Assembly (NCBI GenBank): GCA_013416795.1
Contig: RQSC01001207.1
Location: forward strand, 1-50,972
Reading direction: 5' to 3'
Length of the DNA stretch: 50,972 nt
From: Prasinococcaceae sp. CCMP 1430
Lineage: Eukaryota; Plantae; Prasinodermophyta
Each line of letters starts with the position of its first letter. Position 1 is the first letter of the stretch. The notes beneath the pieces were generated by a model, which searched no databases, had not been told where the DNA came from, and saw only the letters and a list, made by a program, of their open reading frames with translations. Shown here piece after piece: positions 1,939 through 49,338 of this stretch. The translations under genes were made by a program, and so were the position numbers.

Positions 1939-4900
1939 TCAGGCGAGCAGCCGCTTGGCAGCGTCGTGCACGAAGGGGGCCAAGTCGGCCCGCTGGCTGC
2001 GCGCAACCACCTTGGCCGTCGGGTGGCCTGGCACGACGGTCACCTCCACCAGCACGTCCGCTCCAGGCGGCGGGGCCACCTTGGCGCTCATGTAGAAGAT
2101 CTCGGCGCCCGGCGCGGCGCCGGGGCGCTTGGCCACCAGGCCAAGGCCCGCGCCCTGCAGTTTGGCCAGCGCGTCCGCGGGTGCCACCGTCGCAGGCACC
2201 TCCGCGGCGTTGTCCGGCAGTGCGCGCCACTGCTCCAAGAAGGCATTTTGTTCGATCGGGCCGGCGCCTGCAACAGCAGCCGCCTCAAGGGGGATGGTAT
2301 CCGCGAAGTAGTACACACCCGTGTTGCACTTGACGGCCACCTGCAGCGCCTGCACGGCAGGTGCTGGCGTCACCTGACCCGTGAACCCCATCTGCAGGCG
2401 CGTGTTGGCTGACCCGCCGGGTGCCACGGCGGGCACCTGCAGCGCGGCGGCGGCGGCCAGCCCGAAGCTGTTCTTGTTGAACTGTATGGCGAAGCCGTCG
2501 AGCGTCGCCTGCGAGCGGTTCGTGAAACACAGGACGTACGCGGGGCCCGCCACAAGCCGCCCCGAGATCTCCAGCCCATTGCCCTTGCCTGCGTCGAGCA
2601 GCACCGGCATGCTCGGCGCCGCCGCTGTAGCAGCTGGCGCGCTCGCGCCGAAGAGGTCATCCAGCCCCCCGCCCGCCGCGGGCGCCGCGGGCGCGCCGCC
2701 TCCCATGCCCATGAGGTCGGCGAGGGGATCGACGGGCGCCGCAGGCGCAGCAGGTGCCGGCGCAGCGCCGCCACCCAGCCCCATAAGGTCGGCCAGCGGA
2801 TCCACCGGCTGCGCGGCCGCCGGCGCGACCTCGGTGGTCGCACCGAACGACGATGCATCCACGACCTCCGGCTCCTCCACCCCCAACTGGACCTTCTGGC
2901 GCGTGACGAAGGCCTCGGGCGGCTTGTGGTAGACCGACGCCAGCGTCGACATCTGGCCCAGCAGCAGGTCGAGCCAAGCGGGGTCGAGGTTGTTCGAATC
3001 GTCCGAGATGGTGGGCTTCTCCGCGAGCACGACGTCCTTGGCGGCCTCGGGGTCCGTCGACAGCAGGCGCCAGTAAATGTACGCGCGGTCGCGCAGGTCG
3101 GGGTTGTCTGTCTCCTGGGTGGCGTTCGAGAGCACCACCTGGATCATCTGCTGCGGCGCCTCGGTCGGGCGCTTGAGGAAGAGCTTCACCGTGGCGGTCA
3201 GCAGCTGCAGCTGCACGGCGGGCGGCTCCTCCGGGAAGCTCTCGAGGAATGCCTCCAGCAGCTCGTCGGCATTGTCGATGCGCTCGGCGTACTCGCCGAT
3301 GATCCAGATCATCGACGCCTTGGCCGCGGGCTCATCGAGCGTGTCCAGGTTGTCGCAGAGCGTGGCGATGATGCTCTCGTACTGGTTGGGGTACCTGCGG
3401 AAGATGTCCTTGATGACGACGATGGCCTCCTGCACCACATAGTTTACCTTGGTCTGGATGAGCTCCAGCAGCACGTTGATGCAGCGCTCGGCGGCGCGCT
3501 CCAGCGAGATGGCGCAGCGGCCGATGGCGCGCACGGACTTCCGCACGAAGTCCACGTCGACCTCCGTGGCGTACTCCTTGAACTCTTGCAGCACCTGGTC
3601 GATGTTGCGGTCGTTGGCAAGCTTCACCATGATCTCGAGCTTCTCGATTTTGCAGTAGATGGGGTCGTTGTACTTGCAGAAGAACACCTTGATCTCGTGG
3701 CTCAGGATGCCCGGCCTCCTCTGGACGATCAAGTTGATGTTGCGCAGCGCGACGTACTGGATCTCGGGCTCGGAGCTCAGCAGGGTCACAAGCGGCGGCG
3801 CCATCTTCTTCTGCAGGCTGCGCAGCATGTCCGGGCTGGTGATGACCTCCATTTGGCGCATGACGACCTTGACGGCGCTCAGCACCACCGCGCTGTTGGC
3901 GTGCTGCAGGCGCGGGGTCACGCGCTCGACGATCGACTCGGCGTCGCGCGCGTCGCGGGCCTTGTAGCTGGTGATGGCATCCAGGATGAAGACTTGGCCC
4001 CACTCAGTGCATTCATTGAGCGCGGCGAGCAGCTTGAAGAGGGTGTTCTGGTTGACCTGGAACACTGGGCGGCTCGAGGCATCTGAGATCTCCGTGAGCG
4101 CGGCGACTGCGTTGGCGACGACCATCGGGTTCGAGTCAGCCAGCATGTCGACTAGCGCATCGAGGAAGCCGCGCTCCTGCACGAGCTCCGCCGAGATGTC
4201 GAAGAGCTTGGCCACGCACACTGCCGCTGTCTTGCGCACGTAGGGATCCTCGTCGCGCAGGCAGCGCTGCAGCGGGTCGCACAGGTACTCAGTGATCTTG
4301 TCCACGCGGATGCAGCCCATCGTGCGCACGGCCAGCGCGCGAATGAGCGGGTTGGGATCCTGCGTGTCCTTGACGAACGTGTTCACCGCCATGATCGCGA
4401 GGTCCGGCTGCGTCTTGGCGTAGTTGATTAGGTAGAGGTACACGAGCTTCTTCAGCTCGAGGTTGTCCGTCTGCATGCAGTTGGTCACGTCGGGGAAGAG
4501 CATCGACACGTCCTTGCCGACCGTCATCGCTGCGATCACCTTCTTCACGGCGCTCTTCTGCACAGAGCCATCCTGGTGGTGGAGCTCGTCCTTGAGCTCG
4601 GCGATCTCGCCTGCGCGCGCGGTGCGGTCGCGGCGTCAGCGCAGGTGCTCGTAGCGCTCTCGGCGCGCGCGAAAACATGCGATGCGGTTTGCGAGCGCAG
4701 GGCTTCGCGCACGGGACATCACTCGCTCGCATGCTCGCGCGGAGTAGGCTCGCTTCGCCATGCCGCGCCGCGCAAAGGCGCCCGCGGCCCCCTGATGGGA
4801 TGTACCCCCCTGGCGCAACACCCGCGCCTGTCGCAGCAGAGGGCACGAAAAAGGGCGCGGAAACGCGCCCTACCCTGCTCCGGGCAGGCGCAGGCCGTGC

Positions 4901-24761: not shown

Positions 24762-25082
24762 CGTCGCGCGGCGCGCCTGCGTGCCTCCCTGCGGCTTTGT
24801 TTGTTGTTGGCGCGCGTTATGAATTCGACGGCAGGTGTTGAGAGAGAGCTCTCGTTCCGAGGCGCGCTTTTTTATTTTTTTTATCTCGATCGGCGCGGCG
24901 CGCCACAGCGCGCGCTGGTGGCGCCCCTCCCCCTCTCCCGGGGCTGCCGGCCGCGACGGGGTGCCGCCGCTCGCGCGCGTAGGTCGTGTGTGTGTGTGTG
25001 TTGCAGGGGGGGGGGGGAGGGGTGCCGCAAGGGGTGCCACCGTCCCGGGCGCGCAGCGAATAGAGGCCGCGGCCGCCGCGCG

Positions 25083-25194
25083 ATGCCCGCGCGATGCCCG
25101 CGGGCGCTTCCGGGCGCGATGGCAATGCTCGAGTCACCACCGCAGCTCGCGCTGGTGCCGCACGCGGCGCTGGGCGGGGATTGCTGCTACGGGG

Positions 25195-25227
<33 letters not shown>

Positions 25228-27716
25228 CGTCCTCGTCGGGCGTGGTGGTCGCAGTGGCAGTGGCGGAGGCTGCGCGGCCGGGAGAGGGGGGCGAGGGCGT
25301 GGCGGTCGGCGCGGCGCGGCCGGTCGCGAGGGGCACGAAGCGCGCGTCCGGCACCCGCCCACCACGCGCGAGCGGCACCAGGAAGAGGGCGAGCGGCGCG
25401 CGCGCCCCGCGCGCCGGCGGCGAGGGGGCGGCTAAGAGCAGCGCCGCCGGGGGCAGTGGCAAGCCCGCAAGGTCGTCGAGGTACCGCGGCGTGGCGCAGC
25501 ACAAGGTGACGCGCCGATGGGAGAGCCACATCTGGCACGACAAACGCCAGTGTTACCTGGGCTCTTTCGACACGGAGGAGGACGCGGCGGTGGCCTACGA
25601 CCAGGGCGCGCTCAGGCTGAAGGGGCGCGAAAAGGCGGCGCTGAACTTCCCGGAGCGCGACTACTCCGAGTTCGAGCGCGAGACCCAGGGCATGGGAGCG
25701 GAGGAGGCGATCGCCCACCTGCGCCGCGCGTCGTCGGGCTTCTGTCGCGGGCAGGCTAAGTACCGCGGCGTGAGCTTCCGCCCCGCCACGAAGAGGTGGG
25801 AGGCCCGCATGTCGGGCATCACGAGCCGGAAGTACACCTACCTGGGCACCTACGATTCGGCCGCGGAGGCCGCAGCGGCGTACGACCGCGCCGCGATCGC
25901 GTGCAAGGGCAAGGAGGCAATGACCAACTTCGCCATCTCGAACTACTCGGAGGAGCTGGGGGCGCTGGCAGCGGCGTCCAAGTCGAGCCTCCGCAGCAAC
26001 GATGGCAGGCCCTCCCGCGCAACGGTGGCCGCGCTGAATGCCATGTCCGCGGATTACTTCGACAAGGAGGCCGAGCGCAAGCGCAAGGTCGCAGCGTCTA
26101 CCCCCGAGAGCGCGCGCAAGCGTAGGAGAAGGCAAGCGGAGGAGCGGAAACGCGCGGGCATCGCGCGAGGCGCAGGCGCCTTTGGAGCGTTCGGCGGCAT
26201 CGACAGGGACGGAGGGGCCTTTCGTCTTCAGGAGTCGCCCCGGCGTGGGCACGCGCATGGAGTTGAGTCGCAGCGACAAGCGGGTGAGTTGCACGCTGGC
26301 GGCGGGCTCGTCCACAACCCCTTCGGCGGCAGCGCCGGAGCGAATGTGCTGCAGCCGAGCGCGCGCGTCAACCTGAACGCTGCTTTCGATCAGGGAGGCA
26401 ACCCGGCCAGCCCACGCCGCCTGCTGTCGTACTCGAGCGCACCTCCTCCTTACCAGCAGCTGCTGGCGGCGACGCTGCCCATTCTGGGCTCGCCGGTGGC
26501 GCCCCACGGCGGGATGCCCTTCACACAGGCGCATGTCGCGGCGACTCTGCTGCTGACCCCGCCGGGACACGGCGACCCCGTCACCGACGAGAATCGAGGA
26601 CCGCTGAGCGCTAACATTATACGCCACGAGGGTGCGGGTGCCCACCTCGGGATGCCACCTGGAAATGCTGCCGCACAGGCTAAGGTGAAGCGCCGCTCGT
26701 CGATCGAGCTTTTCCCCACGGCGAACGCCGCCTTGCACGGCCCAGAGCGCGACGGCAACGGCGTGTTGCCACCGTCTGGAAGCGAATCACCGGTGCCCCA
26801 TCTGTCAGACCATTCCACGGGATGCGGGGGGGGGGCTGCCGAAATGCAGCAGCCGAGCGCCTTCGCCGAGGTCTCGCCGATTCCGGTGACACCAGCGGAT
26901 CACCAACCACCTCACGACCGACCTGGTTTTGGTGGCGATGCCCAGCAGGGCGCTACGAACGCTGGTGGCAGTGGGCGCCGTGGTAATGCTTGTGCAGCTG
27001 CCGCCGAGCAGCCCGTGCCCGTGGTCTGGGACGAGCTCTTCCAAGCCGGGGGCGGAAGCGGGAACGCGCCCCAGCCGGGCACCGCAAGGAGCGCCGCGAG
27101 TGCGGGGGATGGCGGCCGCGCAGATGCCAACGCCAACGACAGTCTGCGCTTGCCCGGGGACGCCTCGCTGCGCTCGCTGCGCTCGCTGCAGAGCCTGCGG
27201 CACCTGAGCTCAAGCTTCCAGGAAAGTCAATTTTCAAAGCTCTTCCCGCGCGAGAGCAGCAAAAGCCTCATGATGGGAGTCGATGCCACCGCGTTCGAAG
27301 AAACGCTGCGCGTTTGGCAGGACAACGCGGATGAGATGAAGACCCCGCTCCCCGGCCAGCGCGCCTCAGCGACGAACGCGGCGACGCCAGGGGCGCCGCC
27401 GGCTGCAAGGCAAGCGACCAGTGGCGCGAGGGCAGGCACGCAGGCGACGGGCGAGGACTCGACCCCAGCCCCAACGACTGCGATATCCGGCGCGCATACC
27501 AACGCGAAGACTCCCGCAGACCTCCTGGCGAGGCCGACCCCCTTTCGTGCCGTTCCGAGCGGGCGCAAGCTCGGCGCGATCCCGAATGCCGATGAGATTG
27601 GCTCCGCTGTTCAAGCGTGGGGCGAGACCCCGGGAGCCTTGCGCACGCCGTCCTCACTCAGGGATCTGCTGCGAGTGTTCGAGGCGGAGGGCACTGCTGC
27701 TGAAGAGCGCGGATGA
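25083..27716 (+). CDS. AP2-subfamily transcription factor with two AP2 domains (copy B), N-terminal Q10 tract
   Basis: R1 SSRYRGVAQHKVTRRWESHIWHDKRQCYLGSFDT; linker LRRASSGFCRG; R2 AKYRGVSFRPATKRWEARMSG...YLGTYDS...AYDRAAI...AMTNF. In-frame ATGs at 25083, 25119 and 25125. (CAG)10 at 25197-25226. Confidence 0.92.
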
Positions 27717-27958
27717 GGAGAAGTGGGCACGCCGTGCACCGGTGTACTAAATCATGGAGACACAGATGCTCGCGTGCTGTCGCATGATATATCGAGCGAG
27801 AGTTGCCGCGAGCGCACGAGCGAGGCGCGCGGGTCTTATTATGGTGTCGAAAGCAAATATATGCCCGCGCCCGCTGTAAAATGTCGACCACTCGATGCAC
27901 CCGCCCCAACATCGCCCACTCTCTGGGTCGGCGCGTGCCGAGGCACTACTCGCCACCT

Positions 27959-29370
27959 CTAGCCGGAGGCAGGCTCGCCGCCCGCGTCAGGCGCAAGCAT
28001 TGCGGCCAGGCCGTCGCCGAAGTCTAGAGCGACAGAGCCATCGATGGAGCGGGATGCCATCGCATATCCGTCCTGGGCGAGGGCCTCTGCCACCTCTGTC
28101 ATCGCCGCGTCGTCAAAGCCCCAGTTCGGCCGGACTAGCAGGGTGGCGGTGCCGAGCTCATGGTCCGCAGCGGCGTCAACCACGCCAGAGGCACGCCCCA
28201 GAGCCGTGCGAACGTAGGCCGCGCACGCCTCACAGCCCATGCCATCCACCTCGAAGGTGAGCGCAACAAGGTTGCCATCCACTGGTGGCGCGATGGCGCG
28301 CGCGCCGCCGCTCCAGAGTAGCAGCTCCGGCATGAAGGTAAGCCCCATAGCCAGCGCGCTCGCGGTGGTGAGCCTCAGCCTGGCGCGCGTGTCGACCTTC
28401 GCCGAGCTGAGGGTAAACACCCACGCCGTGACAAAATATGCTGCCGTGAGCGCTCGCAGGTGCGGGCGCAAAGGGCCAAGCGACGTGTTGAGCCCGGTGC
28501 ACCCACCCGCAGCGACTCCCAGCGAGGCGAGCCAGTTGACCGCCAGCTGCACGGCACAGCAGCTCGAGCCCAGCAGCCCCCCGACGAGCGCTGCCAGCGA
28601 GTCGCGCGCGTGCCGCCAGTGCTGCCCGAGCTCAACAATCTTCACACCACCGCCGCCGCCCTCTCCGCCGGCGGGCTCGTAGCCCGCCTGGGCGAGCGCG
28701 GCGCGCACCCGCAAACCCAGCGCGTCCCGCTCCGCTGCGCTCCTGCCCGCTCGCACAGCAATCGTCGCCACGCCAGTGGCGACGTCAACCTCGACGCCAA
28801 CCACCCCCTCGACGCTGCGACAGGCCTCTTCCGCTGCGCAGGCGCAGGCAATGCAGCCTATCTTTCCTGCAGGCAGCTCCATAACCTCCTCGCTACCGCC
28901 GCGTGCCACGCGCGCCAGCCGCCGATACGCACCGATAGCGTGGAGCGCCTCGGGCAGCAGCGACATGATGGTCACGCCGCACGTGGTCGCCGCCAGCGCT
29001 GGTAATTGCCAGGCCGTGGCCGCAGACCGCGTAGCCGTCCACCACTGCGCGGCCTGCAGAAGCGCCGCGAACGCGAGCGAGTGCGGCCGCAAGGGGCCGA
29101 GCCACGCGTTGGCGCCCGAGCATCCCAGAGCGAGGGCTGAGAGCGCCAGCTGCAGAGCGCAGCAGGCAGAGGCGAGCATCGACACCACCGACCACAGTGC
29201 GAGGCTGTGCGCCGCGTCAAGCGCTGCAAGCTGTACAGCGAACGCCGCTGCCGCTGCGGCGGCGCGCGCGGGCGCGACCGCAGCGGTCGCAGCGGCCACA
29301 AGCGCCTGCGCTGCGAGCGACGCGGCAAGCGTGCGCGCAAACCCGGGGCTCTGCAGCACGTGCGCCGCAC
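27959..29370 (-). CDS. Membrane protein with duplicated [MerT-like TM module + HMA domain]; 5' end runs into an assembly gap
   Basis: Two TM modules with a Cys-Cys pair (ASACC 29159-29164; SSCC 28556-28561), each followed by LGPLRPH; two HMA-like domains (GCIAC about 28838-28858; GMGCEAC about 28223-28246). Confidence 0.78.
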
Positions 29371-29389
29371 NNNNNNNNNNNNNNNNNNN
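29371..29389. other. Assembly gap (19 N)
   Basis: Run of N; single N also at 5370 and 47227. Confidence 1.
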
Positions 29390-29427: not shown

Positions 29428-30477
29428 ATGGCGCGTGGGGCGCGCCAGGCGCTGCCGCTGCTGCTCGCTGCGGTGGCGGCGGCGGCCACGGCGGCGCGGA
29501 TGGCGGCGGCGCGTTCCCCCGCGCGAAGCGCAGTCGAGCTGCACAGCCACTACTACGACATCTTCCCCTCGCGCAACCGAAACGCGGCGTCGCATAAGTG
29601 GGTCACCCACGTCCTGCGCGATGCTACAGAGTTGCGGCGCAGTGAGCTCGAGTCGGTGCTGTCCGGCTTCTGTGCCGTCTCGGGCAGCCCAGTGCGCCCC
29701 ACCAAATACAATCGCTACCGGTACCGCCTGCCGCTCGCCGGGGGCGGCGCCATCACTGGCGACACGTACCACTGCTGCTGGCCGTGCGTCTGTGACGTGG
29801 AGGTGCGCACTTGCGCGCGCGCGCGCACGCATGCACTCGCGCACGCGAGCACGCGTGCTGCGCCTTCGTTCGGGGCTGACGCGTCCCTCGCCTCGGCGCT
29901 GCCTCCCCTCCCCCTTTCCCCCGCTGCATAGGACTTTCTCATGGTCGACTACGTCGATGGCGTGGTGACCCGCGACAGCGGGCCCGACGGGGAGGCGATG
30001 CCGTTCCTCGCGATGGGCGATCCGTGCGCAAACGAAGAGGCGCTGATGCAGCCGTTCATTCAGCCTTTCGACCGCCGCGAAACCACCCTGTGGCGTGAGG
30101 CACCCGAGGTCCGCTGCGAGGGCGGCAAGCTGCGAGGAGCCACGTACACGCGACGAGGTCTCGTCGCAATTGGCGTGTTTGCCCTGGCAGAGGATGAAGC
30201 GGTCGCAGGCGATGGACTGCTCTCAATGGATGGATCATACGCGGACGATGGGCCGCTCGTTGTTGCCAGCCCGCAGCCGGGGCGCGTCACGGTCACGGCG
30301 ACGGGGCTAGCCGTACAGCTGGAGGGCGAGTACGCGACCCAGTGCTACGATCGTGAGCTGGCTGGTTTCAACAGCGGCATGGGCGAGATCTTCCGTCGTG
30401 TCGCGGCCATCAACCCTCCCAAGTTGAGTGCGCCGCGCTGCGAAAGTGAGGGTGTGTGCCTCGAGCCTGCTCAATAG
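29428..30477 (+). CDS. Uncharacterised, probably secreted Cys-rich protein (FCAVSGSP, CCWPCVCD), 2 exons (29428-29802, 29932-30477)
   Basis: Hydrophobic signal-peptide-like N-terminus; GT-AG intron 29803-29931 with CTGAC, phase 0, giving ...CVCDVE|DFLMVD...; coding-like codon usage. Confidence 0.75.
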
Positions 30478-47409: not shown

Positions 47410-49338
47410 ATGGCCTCCCGCGCGGCCGTGCGGCCCCTGCCGCGGCTGGCCCGCGCGCCGGAGCAGCAGCAGCGCGGCCGCGAGAGGCGGCAACGCGGCA
47501 GGCCCGGGGTGGCGAGGCGCGCGCGGCAGCAGGCCGCGTCCGGCGCGAGCGCCGCGGACGGGAGTCCGGCCACTCCGGCAGGCAGCACGCCCTTTGGTAT
47601 CGAGCAGTCTGGCTCTCTCGCGCGCTGCACACCCGTCGTGCCGCCCGAAGTCGTCGGTGTTGACGTGATCGTGATCGGCGGTGGGCCTGTGGGCATGGAG
47701 GTGGCCAGTTTGGCGCGCGGCCTCGGCAAGAGGGTGCTCGTAGCGGAAGTGCGCGGCTGCCTGCTGGCGGCACCTACTGCGACGGCCTCGAAGGCGCTCC
47801 GCGAGGCCTCTTGTCGCCTAGGCGCGCCGGACGGTTCGCGTCGCGTGCCGTGGGGAGACGTTCAGGCGGAGGTCAACGCCGCGATCGCCCGTGCGGTCGA
47901 CCTGACAGAGAGGCGAGGCTTCGCGGGCGCCAAACCAAAGAGGATCGACGTCGCCGCGGCTCCCCATTCCGCGCCTTCCCCGTCGGAGCCCGGGCCAGAG
48001 TCGTTGCAGATGGCGTCACCACGCTCGCGCGGCTCAGTGTGCGTCGTAGCGACGCGCGCGCGCTTTGCGGAGGGCGGAAGTGGTGACGTCCTTTTGGAAT
48101 ACGCAGGCACTGGTTCCGGTCTCACGCCGTGGGGCGGCGCCGTGCCCTGCACCGTGCGCGCGCCGTTGGTCTTCCTGGCCACCGGCTCGCACGCGGCCCG
48201 TCCAAGCGTGCTCCCATGGGACAGTGCGGACGCCCGCGGATGGCTTTTCGATTCAGACTCGGTGGCCAACCCCGCGAGCAACCTCGGCTTTGTGCCAGAG
48301 GATCTGGTCGTCCATGGCGGTGGAATGATCGGCACTGAGTACGCCGCCATCATGAGAGGACTAGGCGCGCGGGTGACCCTTGTCTGCCGCGAGGACGAGC
48401 TGTTGGTAGAGCAGCAGGTAGACGAGGACGTGGTCGTTGCGATCAGGCGACGGATGGAGAGTCTTGGCATCGACGTGCGTCTCGCGCAGGACATCGTCGC
48501 AGCCATCCCTCCGAACCGGTCAGGCGGTGACTCACGAGGAAGCGTGCGGCTCACGAGTGGGGACGAGCTGAAGTGCGACGCACTCCTCTCTTGCGTCGGT
48601 CGTGTAGGCACGAGCGAGCAGCTCGGGTTGGATTCCGTCGGCCTGCACGCGAATGGAGACGGCAAGATTGAAGTCGATTCTTCGATGTGCTGCGGCATCC
48701 TGAGCCGCGAGGTGGAGGAGGGTGCCAGTGGTGGGGTGTCCACCACTGCGGTGTACGCCATCGGCGACTTAGCAGCGAACGCGCCCATCGAACCGGTGGG
48801 AATCTCGTCGACCGGGCTCGCCCAGGCGCACCTGGCGTTGCGTAGGGCGCTTGAGTCGGAGTTCGAGCTCGCGCACCCCAAGTGGCCCCGGCACATCGTG
48901 CGAGCCCCACCGGTCATGATATGGACAGAGCCTACAATTGCGTTCGTTGGAATGTCGGCGGCTCGCGCGGTCGAGCTGCATGGCGAGGCCGAGGTGGGCT
49001 CCGAGATCGTGCACTTCAATGAGACGACGCCGAGCATCACGCACCCGATCGAAGGCTTCTTAAAGCTCGTGTACCGCGTGGCCGACGGGCGCGTGCTCGG
49101 CGTGCACGTTGTGGGCAACGCGGCGGAGGAGATCATCCACCATGCCGCCGTCCTGGTCAACGCCAACGGCTACGACTCCATTTATTGCCTCATCGCAGAG
49201 GTGCCGGCGGGGCACACCTACTCGGAGGCCTTTCGCATCGCGGCCGTACGCGCGGCGGAGCGCGTGGAGGATTGCGTTGACTCGGTCGGCATGCCGCGAG
49301 CGCAGCACGAATGGGCGGGGCAGTGGCTCGACGAGTGA
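47410..49338 (+). CDS. Flavoprotein pyridine nucleotide-disulfide oxidoreductase, soluble transhydrogenase (SthA/UdhA)-like, with a transit-peptide-like N-terminus
   Basis: DVIVIGGGPVG (FAD); SKALREA with no CxxxxC; ATGS; FDSDSV; GGGMIGTEYAAIMRGLG; GRVG...LGLDSVGL; VYAIGD; IWTEPTIAFVG; FLKLVY...LGVHVVG...EIIH; TYSEAFRIAA. Confidence 0.75.
   Translation: MASRAAVRPLPRLARAPEQQQRGRERRQRGRPGVARRARQQAASGASAADGSPATPAGSTPFGIEQSGSLARCTPVVPPEVVGVDVIVIGGGPVGMEVASLARGLGKRVLVAEVRGCLLAAPTATASKALREASCRLGAPDGSRRVPWGDVQAEVNAAIARAVDLTERRGFAGAKPKRIDVAAAPHSAPSPSEPGPESLQMASPRSRGSVCVVATRARFAEGGSGDVLLEYAGTGSGLTPWGGAVPCTVRAPLVFLATGSHAARPSVLPWDSADARGWLFDSDSVANPASNLGFVPEDLVVHGGGMIGTEYAAIMRGLGARVTLVCREDELLVEQQVDEDVVVAIRRRMESLGIDVRLAQDIVAAIPPNRSGGDSRGSVRLTSGDELKCDALLSCVGRVGTSEQLGLDSVGLHANGDGKIEVDSSMCCGILSREVEEGASGGVSTTAVYAIGDLAANAPIEPVGISSTGLAQAHLALRRALESEFELAHPKWPRHIVRAPPVMIWTEPTIAFVGMSAARAVELHGEAEVGSEIVHFNETTPSITHPIEGFLKLVYRVADGRVLGVHVVGNAAEEIIHHAAVLVNANGYDSIYCLIAEVPAGHTYSEAFRIAAVRAAERVEDCVDSVGMPRAQHEWAGQWLDE

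Follow-up and report, generated by a model that had tools for sequence, protein, structure and literature searches.

A minus-strand gene of the prasinodermophyte alga Prasinococcaceae sp. CCMP 1430 encodes a protein in which a membrane module resembling the bacterial mercury transporter MerT, followed by a heavy-metal-associated (HMA) domain, occurs twice. The gene lies in contig RQSC01001207.1 (assembly GCA_013416795.1), all 50,972 nucleotides of which were analysed and are referred to here as the window. It is real and transcribed, and its product belongs to a family that, as judged from its sampled members, is old, eukaryote-wide and so far unnamed. The sequences make it probable that the protein is a cysteine-relay transporter for a soft metal, within a family derived from the bacterial MerT/MerP type of relay. 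MerT-type transporters are treated as a speciality of bacterial mercury resistance, and here the same building block forms the core of an old and widespread eukaryotic family that takes in green algae, haptophytes, diatoms, pelagophytes, chromerids, parasitic dinoflagellates and choanoflagellates.

The protein begins with an HLxxSPGF motif and an extra transmembrane (TM) helix, termed TM0, which are followed by a three-helix module M1 (TM1 to TM3), a first HMA domain (HMA1), a linker, a second three-helix module M2 (TM1' to TM3') and a second HMA domain (HMA2). The motifs quoted in an earlier note on this DNA, which had been made from the letters alone, are all present in the minus-strand open reading frame (ORF), namely MLASACCALQL, LLGSSCCAVQL, GCxGxN-xx-LGPLRPH twice, GCIACAC and GMGCEAC. 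The internal duplication claimed in that note also holds, as 178 residues of the two 233-aa halves can be aligned at 36% identity (E 1e-16); the duplication is therefore real and takes in the membrane part and the soluble domain together.

The soluble domains are readily assigned. Pfam HMA (PF00403) matches two stretches above its gathering threshold (42.4 against 24.8 bits) and is matched by 40 of 42 relatives with the same tandem arrangement. In an AlphaFold2 (AF2) model built on the family alignment, with a mean predicted local distance difference test (pLDDT) of 76.7, both domains adopt the ferredoxin-like beta-alpha-beta-beta-alpha(-beta) fold at a pLDDT of 85–93. A single-sequence model of P0001, the near-identical protein of a marine metagenome contig, reached a pLDDT of 46 and was dropped in favour of this one. 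By sequence or fold the domains match those of CopA, CopZ, MerP, NmerA and ZntA in the PDB, with TM-scores of 0.78–0.84 against the MerP and CopZ structures and, in a second fold search, Z up to 10.7, and both have the CxxC loop, in the form of CIAC in HMA1 and GMGCEAC in HMA2.

The relationship of the membrane part to MerT is evident from profile searches. The NCBIfam model MerTP_fusion (NF033556) matches the window protein from position 3 to 183 of its 186 positions (E 3.9e-13/4.1e-14), and does so on unit 2, where a MerT-type membrane part leads directly into a MerP-type HMA domain. Because the HMA part could carry this score by itself, the membrane pieces were scanned alone. All four that were tested, both modules of the window protein and both of a 38%-identical relative, matched the same TM1–TM2 region of MerTP_fusion (E 4e-4 to 2e-2), and one of them also matched Pfam MerT at 1e-3 and NCBIfam MerT at 5e-3. 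At full length every one of the 42 relatives matches MerTP_fusion (best 1.1e-25), and the HMA-free models match about half of them, 22 in the case of NCBIfam MerT (best 1.8e-9) and 21 in that of Pfam MerT (best 1.7e-8).

Structural comparison gives a similar picture. Both modules have three predicted spans, seen as helices in the AF2 model, with an invariant vicinal Cys pair (CC) in the first. When the model was compared with AlphaFold DB clusters using Foldseek, eukaryotic members of the family were retrieved first, including R1ET79, presumably an Emiliania huxleyi entry. The next matches were bacterial MerT-HMA fusions labelled 'Mercuric transport protein MerT', which align to the second unit in its entirety, residues 260–460 (E 1e-7 to 1e-6). 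The homology of the membrane modules to MerT, and that of one unit to a MerT–MerP fusion, can thus be held together with the architecture at high confidence. The doubled MerT-like and HMA arrangement lacking a P-type ATPase part, which the earlier note had read from the letters, is upheld by these profile and Foldseek matches.

The extent of the family only became apparent from an exhaustive search, in which five membrane modules were used as a profile against 1.84 billion representatives; a word-indexed homologue search with the full protein had returned only three relatives. The profile search yielded 659 proteins at E<=1e-3, 277 at <=1e-10 and 42 at <=1e-30. The top 150 share a signature in which TM1 contains S-S-C-C-x-x-Q-L, the loop after it G-C-x-G-x-N, the beginning of TM2 L-G-P-x-R-P and the end of TM3 P-E, followed by the HMA CxxC; the window protein contains this signature twice. 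The 42 tandem proteins are 27–43% identical to the window protein and have 22 invariant columns, amongst which are the M1 loop Cys, the HMA1 CxxC, Q, GP, R, PE and both CC pairs, whose loss in relatives would have spoken against the initial proposal. Within M1 the invariant residues of the family are S, CC, Q, G, C, G, GP, R and PE. The M2 loop Cys is nearly invariant among the 42; in 28 M2 units, neither it nor the HMA2 CxxC varies.

All members that carry a source name are eukaryotic. They include the alveolates Chromera velia and Amoebophrya, the diatoms Thalassiosira profunda, Skeletonema potamos and Attheya, the pelagophyte Chrysophaeum taylorii and the choanoflagellate Diaphanoeca grandis, the last of which is marked 'complete', as is one MMETSP transcript. 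Haptophyte and diatom clusters were found in the ESM Atlas, and the contigs of other members carry eukaryotic neighbours (MORN, TMEM260, Erv1/Alr, PPR and Mak16). When one genome from each of 185,579 prokaryotic species was scanned with the SSCC pattern, no genuine carrier emerged; the pattern is narrow, and the scan thus excludes only close prokaryotic copies. The single candidate, in a Rhizomicrobium metagenome-assembled genome (MAG) at L005:5001-5093, was rejected, its MLASACCALQ being a chance string within a short out-of-frame ORF that separates two unrelated genes. The breadth of the family among eukaryotes argues against a recent bacterial acquisition by this alga. The suggestion that the protein is possibly of bacterial origin therefore survives in part: the homology to bacterial MerT stands, and a recent transfer into this alga does not, given a eukaryote-wide family and an M1/M2 duplication that is older.

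Existing annotations of members read only 'HMA domain-containing protein', 'copper chaperone CopZ' or 'hypothetical protein'. In the literature searched in full text, no eukaryotic MerT-type protein is described and the accessions of the named members do not occur, and the lack of a characterised eukaryotic MerT-type transporter, as stated at the outset, agrees with this. A red-algal genome paper reports merT to be absent there (PMC9812998). MerT-like helices and HMA domains are known components; what is new is the eukaryotic family with its own signature, the paralogy of M1 and M2 with the presumed inverting helix, and the fused tandem form.

P0003 (L006:1547-3262, 38% identical) departs from all other members at residues ~440–571, where a truncated HMA2 runs into a Pro/Ser-rich tail, probably because the metagenome gene caller read through an intron or made a frame error. 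The rank-5 cluster of the ESM Atlas is made up of proteins of ~179 aa, 83% with HMA and 25% with Pfam MerT, whose commonest phylum is Mucoromycota; it may represent a fungal (or fungal-endosymbiont) lineage of single-unit MerT-HMA proteins.

The two modules are of different types. Hidden Markov models (HMMs) were constructed from the first and the second modules of 36 tandem proteins, and with these every one of 104 single-module matches could be classified, 66 as M1-like and 38 as M2-like, each with a score gap of >10 bits. The first module of the window protein scores 109 on the M1 and 47 on the M2 model, and the second 58 and 120, such that the first, which comes with HLxxSPGF and TM0, is of M1 type and the second of M2 type. 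A maximum-likelihood tree of 176 modules, which holds family modules only, is divided by one split into 74 M2 and 102 M1 modules (support 0.956) with none misplaced. So clean a split places the duplication before the sampled diversity, and on this tree M1 and M2 are ancient paralogues. Many of the single-module matches are fragments of tandem genes, and complete stand-alone genes exist for both types. Those of M1 type carry HLxxSPGF and TM0 (L002, L004), and those of M2 type encode ~210 aa and begin directly at TM1' (L009, L011, complete transcripts). No partner module lies within 5–9 kb of any of the stand-alone genes. The existence of M1 and M2 as separate ancient types fits an obligate M1+M2 pair.

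The arrangement of the modules in the membrane can be approached through hydropathy and charge. In family-averaged hydropathy TM0, TM1, TM3, TM1' and TM3' are clearly hydrophobic. The mean number of Lys and Arg residues (K+R) in the 42 tandem proteins is 3.2 at the N-terminus, 1.0 in the TM2–TM3 loop, 4.6 after TM3, 4.5 in the TM2'–TM3' loop and 0.8 after TM3', and the segment between TM0 and TM1 has a net charge of -1.0. The K/R-rich stretches are thus the segment that leads from TM3 to HMA1 and the TM2'–TM3' loop of M2. Across ~250 modules, including stand-alone ones, K+R is 1.2 in loop 2 and 3.5 after the PE motif for M1, and 4.6 and 1.7, respectively, for M2; the tiny Mann–Whitney p-values of these differences are descriptive only, the sequences being related. 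With TM0 ahead of M1 only, and a reciprocal K/R bias, M1 and M2 should sit antiparallel. The pattern suggests that HMA1 is cytosolic and HMA2 on the far side of the membrane, lumenal or extracellular. By the positive-inside rule the N-terminus would be cytosolic and TM0 would cross outward, M1 would then run out-in-out-in and leave HMA1 in the cytosol, whilst M2 would run in-out-in-out, the orientation of MerT, and leave HMA2 on the side that MerP occupies in bacteria. The extra helix TM0 would be what inverts M1.

Such a layout would allow an ATP-independent relay. A thiophilic ion may be caught by the CxxC of one HMA domain, passed by ligand exchange to the adjacent loop Cys and intramembrane CC, and from there to the corresponding cysteines (CC, then loop Cys) of the inverted module, before the opposite-face HMA domain takes it over. 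The putative chain would be HMA2 CxxC (outside), M2 loop Cys, TM1' CC, TM1 CC, M1 loop Cys and HMA1 CxxC (cytosol), and the reverse direction is possible. In the Tn21/Tn501 systems Hg(II) is accepted by the intramembrane CC of MerT and then by the N-terminal HMA domain of MerA. The eukaryotic protein would have merged this bacterial chain of MerP, MerT and NmerA into one polypeptide, with the inverted M1 standing in for the cytoplasmic Cys pair of MerT that is missing here. The most plausible physiological metal is Cu(I), which is favoured by the age and housekeeping-like character of the family in marine protists and by the harm that Hg import would do where no reductase follows; Hg(II), Cd(II), Ag(I) and Zn(II) are less probable candidates.

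Several observations weigh against a transporter of MerT descent. At 49.4–52.6 bits the window protein falls far short of the MerTP_fusion equivalog cut-off of 180, as does the best member of the family, and its first module scores only 9.6 bits (E 1.2) on Pfam MerT (PF02411), for which the cut-off is 32.9. No family member reaches any curated MerT cut-off, that of NCBIfam MerT (PRK13751) being 150 bits. A second Cys pair, in the cytoplasmic loop, is a defining trait of the Tn21/Tn501 MerT, and this TM2–TM3 loop pair is absent from both modules in the window protein as well as in the consensus. Genes of a mer operon (MerR, MerP, MerA) are lacking at the locus, where the neighbours encode an AP2 factor and a Cys-rich protein, and around the gene and the relatives examined neither a conserved neighbour nor any metal-related context came to light. 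The sub-threshold scores, the lack of the second Cys pair and the lack of a mer operon make the protein MerT-like, and not a MerT.

Further such points concern structure and metal. The predicted template modelling score of the AF2 model is only 0.53, and neither Foldseek against the PDB nor a wide VIA-align search found a solved structure that resembles the membrane part, the matches being generic helical ones (Z ~7) with no MerF or CcdA amongst them. TM2, and especially TM2', is weakly hydrophobic in the family average and contains a conserved Arg, and the span count and the placement of the HMA domains on opposite faces could therefore be wrong. Finally, the Glu within the CEAC of HMA2 is invariant across M2 units (G-C-E-x-C) and could point to a divalent metal rather than to Cu(I).

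The main alternative is a membrane-anchored metallochaperone or sensor. Such a protein would bind metal without taking it across the membrane, and would buffer it, hand it to a partner such as a P1B-ATPase or a cuproenzyme, or signal metal status. Modules of the HMA type are typical of chaperones and regulators, the membrane portion is small (three helices per module, TM2 being weakly hydrophobic), and no energy-coupling domain appeared in the Pfam scan. However, the best-conserved residues (CC, Q and PE) lie inside the membrane helices and not just in the HMA domains, the homology is to a transporter, and the charge bias puts the HMA domains on opposite faces, which a pure chaperone would not need. 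On balance this explanation is unlikely.

A strict Mer-type importer of Hg(II), or of a single toxic metal such as Cd, would feed cytosolic detoxification instead of supplying a nutrient metal. In bacteria, MerT crosses the membrane three times and takes in Hg(II) that it receives from MerP in the periplasm, and the ion is then reduced by MerA in the cytoplasm (PMC3466566). The only homologues of known function are indeed Hg(II) importers, and HMA2 also matches MerP and NmerA, but no MerA, MerR or MerB was seen near the window gene or near its relatives, and a broad, ancient marine family that includes a non-photosynthetic parasite and a choanoflagellate suggests a housekeeping metal. Such a role is very improbable. 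Two candidates for a MerA-type partner were rejected. The class-I pyridine-nucleotide-disulfide oxidoreductase encoded at L002:6348-7877, 5 kb from a stand-alone M1 gene in a eukaryotic MAG, scores 383 bits as a dihydrolipoyl dehydrogenase and 283 as MerA, and the oxidoreductase at window positions 47410–49338 is SthA-like.

The predicted 3+3 antiparallel layout with Cys residues in the first helices also recalls CcdA and DsbD, which raises the question of whether the protein is a transmembrane thiol-disulfide (electron) relay that moves reducing equivalents and not metal. Feature neighbours in the ESM Atlas include DsbD_2+HMA clusters at a low score (0.63). Yet no DsbD or CcdA profile or fold match was obtained, the soluble domains are of the HMA and not the thioredoxin type, MerT accounts for all of the significant homology, and a vicinal CC combined with the HMA CxxC is the signature of a metal ligand, so that electron transfer is very improbable. 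Hardly credible at all is an artefact, in which the gene would be dead, would stem from contaminating bacteria or would have been transferred horizontally only very recently. In favour of this are an assembly gap next to the gene and the fact that its nearest characterised relatives come from bacteria. However, its G+C of ~0.70 equals that of its flanks in a window that is uniformly ~0.65–0.72, its neighbours are eukaryotic here as well as in an independent TARA contig, both RNA libraries and a metatranscriptome contain it, its frame is intact and its natural indel is in frame, dozens of eukaryotic orthologues exist, and no true SSCC carrier turned up among the prokaryotic species scanned.

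The gene is intron-less, with 469 codons in the window and a TAG stop at 27959–27961. As listed, the ORF covers 27959..29359 (-), and the frame stays open in the 5' direction to 29369, where a gap of 20 N begins. The gap is bridged by L001, an 8-kb TARA Oceans metagenome contig that is 99% identical and has the same neighbours on both sides; in the alignment it stands for ~345 bp (L001 about 3400–3745). It hides the start codon and the first ~18 codons (MPWPGLALRAVRARAPR...), as well as all of the intergenic DNA between this gene and the divergent one at 29428+. The L001 translation has two in-frame stops and then a first ATG (MPWPGLALRAV...), reading MPWPGLALRAVRARAPRAAH-VLQSPGF..., from which a product of ~485 aa is likely. 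P0001, the protein encoded by L001, is 99% identical to the window ORF, and its start is a GTG picked by a prokaryote-style gene caller. Any annotation of this assembly would truncate or mis-start the gene owing to the gap.

Contigs of RNA-type libraries from the same organism and of a marine metatranscriptome cover the gene and contain no splice joints. P0001 and a marine metatranscriptome contig share an in-frame deletion of 3 nt at 28303 (WSGGARA to WSGARA), between TM3' and HMA2, a natural variant of the kind shown by coding sequence under constraint. The HLxxSPGF motif marks M1-type proteins and stands at the extreme N-terminus in most members. A long organellar transit peptide was considered and rejected, because the motif is at the very N-terminus in most relatives and is preceded by ~18 residues here; with so few residues before it, a plastid or mitochondrial presequence is not supported. 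TM0 precedes M1 only. At the other end of the protein the tail has a pLDDT below 50 for its last 11 residues (475–485) and of 54 for the preceding block. The parts of the gene and protein are listed in the table.

Table. Positions in the window of the gene, the adjoining assembly gap and the parts of the encoded protein
Feature	Position	Strand	Basis
Coding region in the window	27959..29369	-	ORF list, RNA contigs; P0001 and L001 for the N-terminus
20-N assembly gap	29370..29389	.	Window vs L001 alignment
N-terminal motif HVLQSPGF (consensus HLxxSPGF)	29339..29362	-	Consensus of 42 tandem members
TM0, extra hydrophobic helix	29273..29332	-	Family hydropathy, AF2 helix 27-47 (pLDDT ~90), charge bias
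MerT-like module M1 (TM1-TM3)	28943..29239	-	MerTP_fusion E 0.002, Pfam MerT weak
M1 vicinal CC in TM1 (MLASACCALQL)	29159-29164	-	Sequence
M1 loop GCSGAN	29108-29125	-	Sequence
M1 LGPLRPH	29081-29101	-	Sequence
M1 PE motif	28943-28960	-	Sequence
HMA domain 1, predicted cytosolic	28673..28888	-	Pfam HMA second stretch, AF2 beta-alpha-beta-beta-alpha, pLDDT ~90
HMA1 CxxC, CIAC (in GCIACAC)	28844-28855	-	Sequence
Gly-rich low-confidence linker, unit 1 to unit 2	28610..28672	-	AF2 pLDDT 52-69, poorly conserved columns
MerT-like module M2 (TM1'-TM3')	28319..28609	-	Profiles, conservation, bacterial MerT-HMA fusions on model residues 260-460
M2 CC in TM1' (LLGSSCCAVQL)	28556-28561	-	Sequence
M2 loop GCTGLN	28487-28504	-	Sequence
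M2 LGPLRPH	28460-28480	-	Sequence
M2 PE motif	28319-28336	-	Sequence
HMA domain 2, predicted non-cytosolic side	28055..28273	-	Pfam HMA 9e-11, PDB sequence and fold matches
HMA2 canonical GMGCEAC	28223-28243	-	Sequence
C-terminal tail, unconserved, low-confidence	27962..28054	-	No family consensus; AF2 pLDDT

A plant-type double-AP2 factor gene is convergent with the MerT/HMA gene (24801–27716, +). The two genes end, at 27716 and 27959 respectively, only ~240 bp apart, and their transcripts may therefore overlap. One RNA-type library contig of 1775 nt (window 27400–28630) reaches from the 3' end of the AP2 gene into the 3' part of the MerT/HMA gene, and carry-over of DNA is a possible source of it. 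On the other side, the divergent neighbour at 29428–30477 (+) appears as two consecutive ORFs of 167 and 178 aa, which probably belong to a single gene interrupted by an intron or a frame change. Its Cys-rich protein has a signal-like N-terminus and a CCWPCVCD motif, and no Pfam family was found for it. It was rejected as a conserved partner, since the genes upstream of two homologues of the MerT/HMA gene (L006, L007) are unrelated to it.

If the proposed relay does move Cu or another thiophilic metal, it would be a missing part of the acquisition and distribution of trace metals in marine protists, with a bearing on Cu/Fe co-limitation, on the bioaccumulation of Hg and Cd at the base of the marine food web and on algal metal bioremediation. 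The occurrence of M1 and M2 either as two genes or as one fused gene, together with a predicted inverting helix, offers a clean natural case for the origins of inverted-repeat transporters. As a more tentative proposal, eukaryotes might hold a third class of soft-metal transporter beside the Ctr channels and the P1B-ATPases, an ATP-independent antiparallel carrier with an M1/M2 Cys relay, fused or encoded by two genes, and with an HMA donor or acceptor on each face.

Amongst known systems the closest are the bacterial MerTP (NF033556) and MerT-HMA fusions, which share with the window protein the CC of TM1, the G-x-x-G loop, the P-x-R-P turn, two further helices and the C-terminal HMA CxxC. In contrast to these, the window family is eukaryotic, has its own invariant SSCCxxQL, a GCxGxN with a third Cys and PE, is duplicated into M1 and M2 with an extra helix on M1, and has no mer operon. 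The MerT of Tn21/Tn501 likewise has three spans, the first of which bears CC, and passes a thiophilic metal from one HMA-fold protein to another across the membrane (PMC3466566). The predicted order of HMA2 outside, CC in the membrane and HMA1 inside would mirror the passage from MerP through MerT to NmerA. Unlike that MerT, the window protein has no second Cys pair, has a second MerT-like module, predicted to be inverted, and has its HMA domains covalently attached. MerF, MerC and MerE are also small Cys-pair membrane proteins of Hg(II) uptake, but these have two or four spans and gave no profile or PDB match.

The resemblance to CcdA/DsbD, with two antiparallel three-helix repeats, Cys in the first helix and thiol chemistry across the membrane, is one of analogy only, as those proteins carry electrons, have thioredoxin-like partners and show no detected relation in sequence or fold. 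The eukaryotic copper proteins, Ctr/COPT, the P1B-type HMA ATPases, Atx1, CCS and the HIPPs, handle Cu(I) or other soft metals through Cys and Met ligands and use HMA domains as donors and acceptors. The window protein differs from them in having no Ctr fold, ATPase domains or isoprenylation site, and in possessing a MerT-like membrane part, which in the literature searched is undescribed for eukaryotic metal transport.

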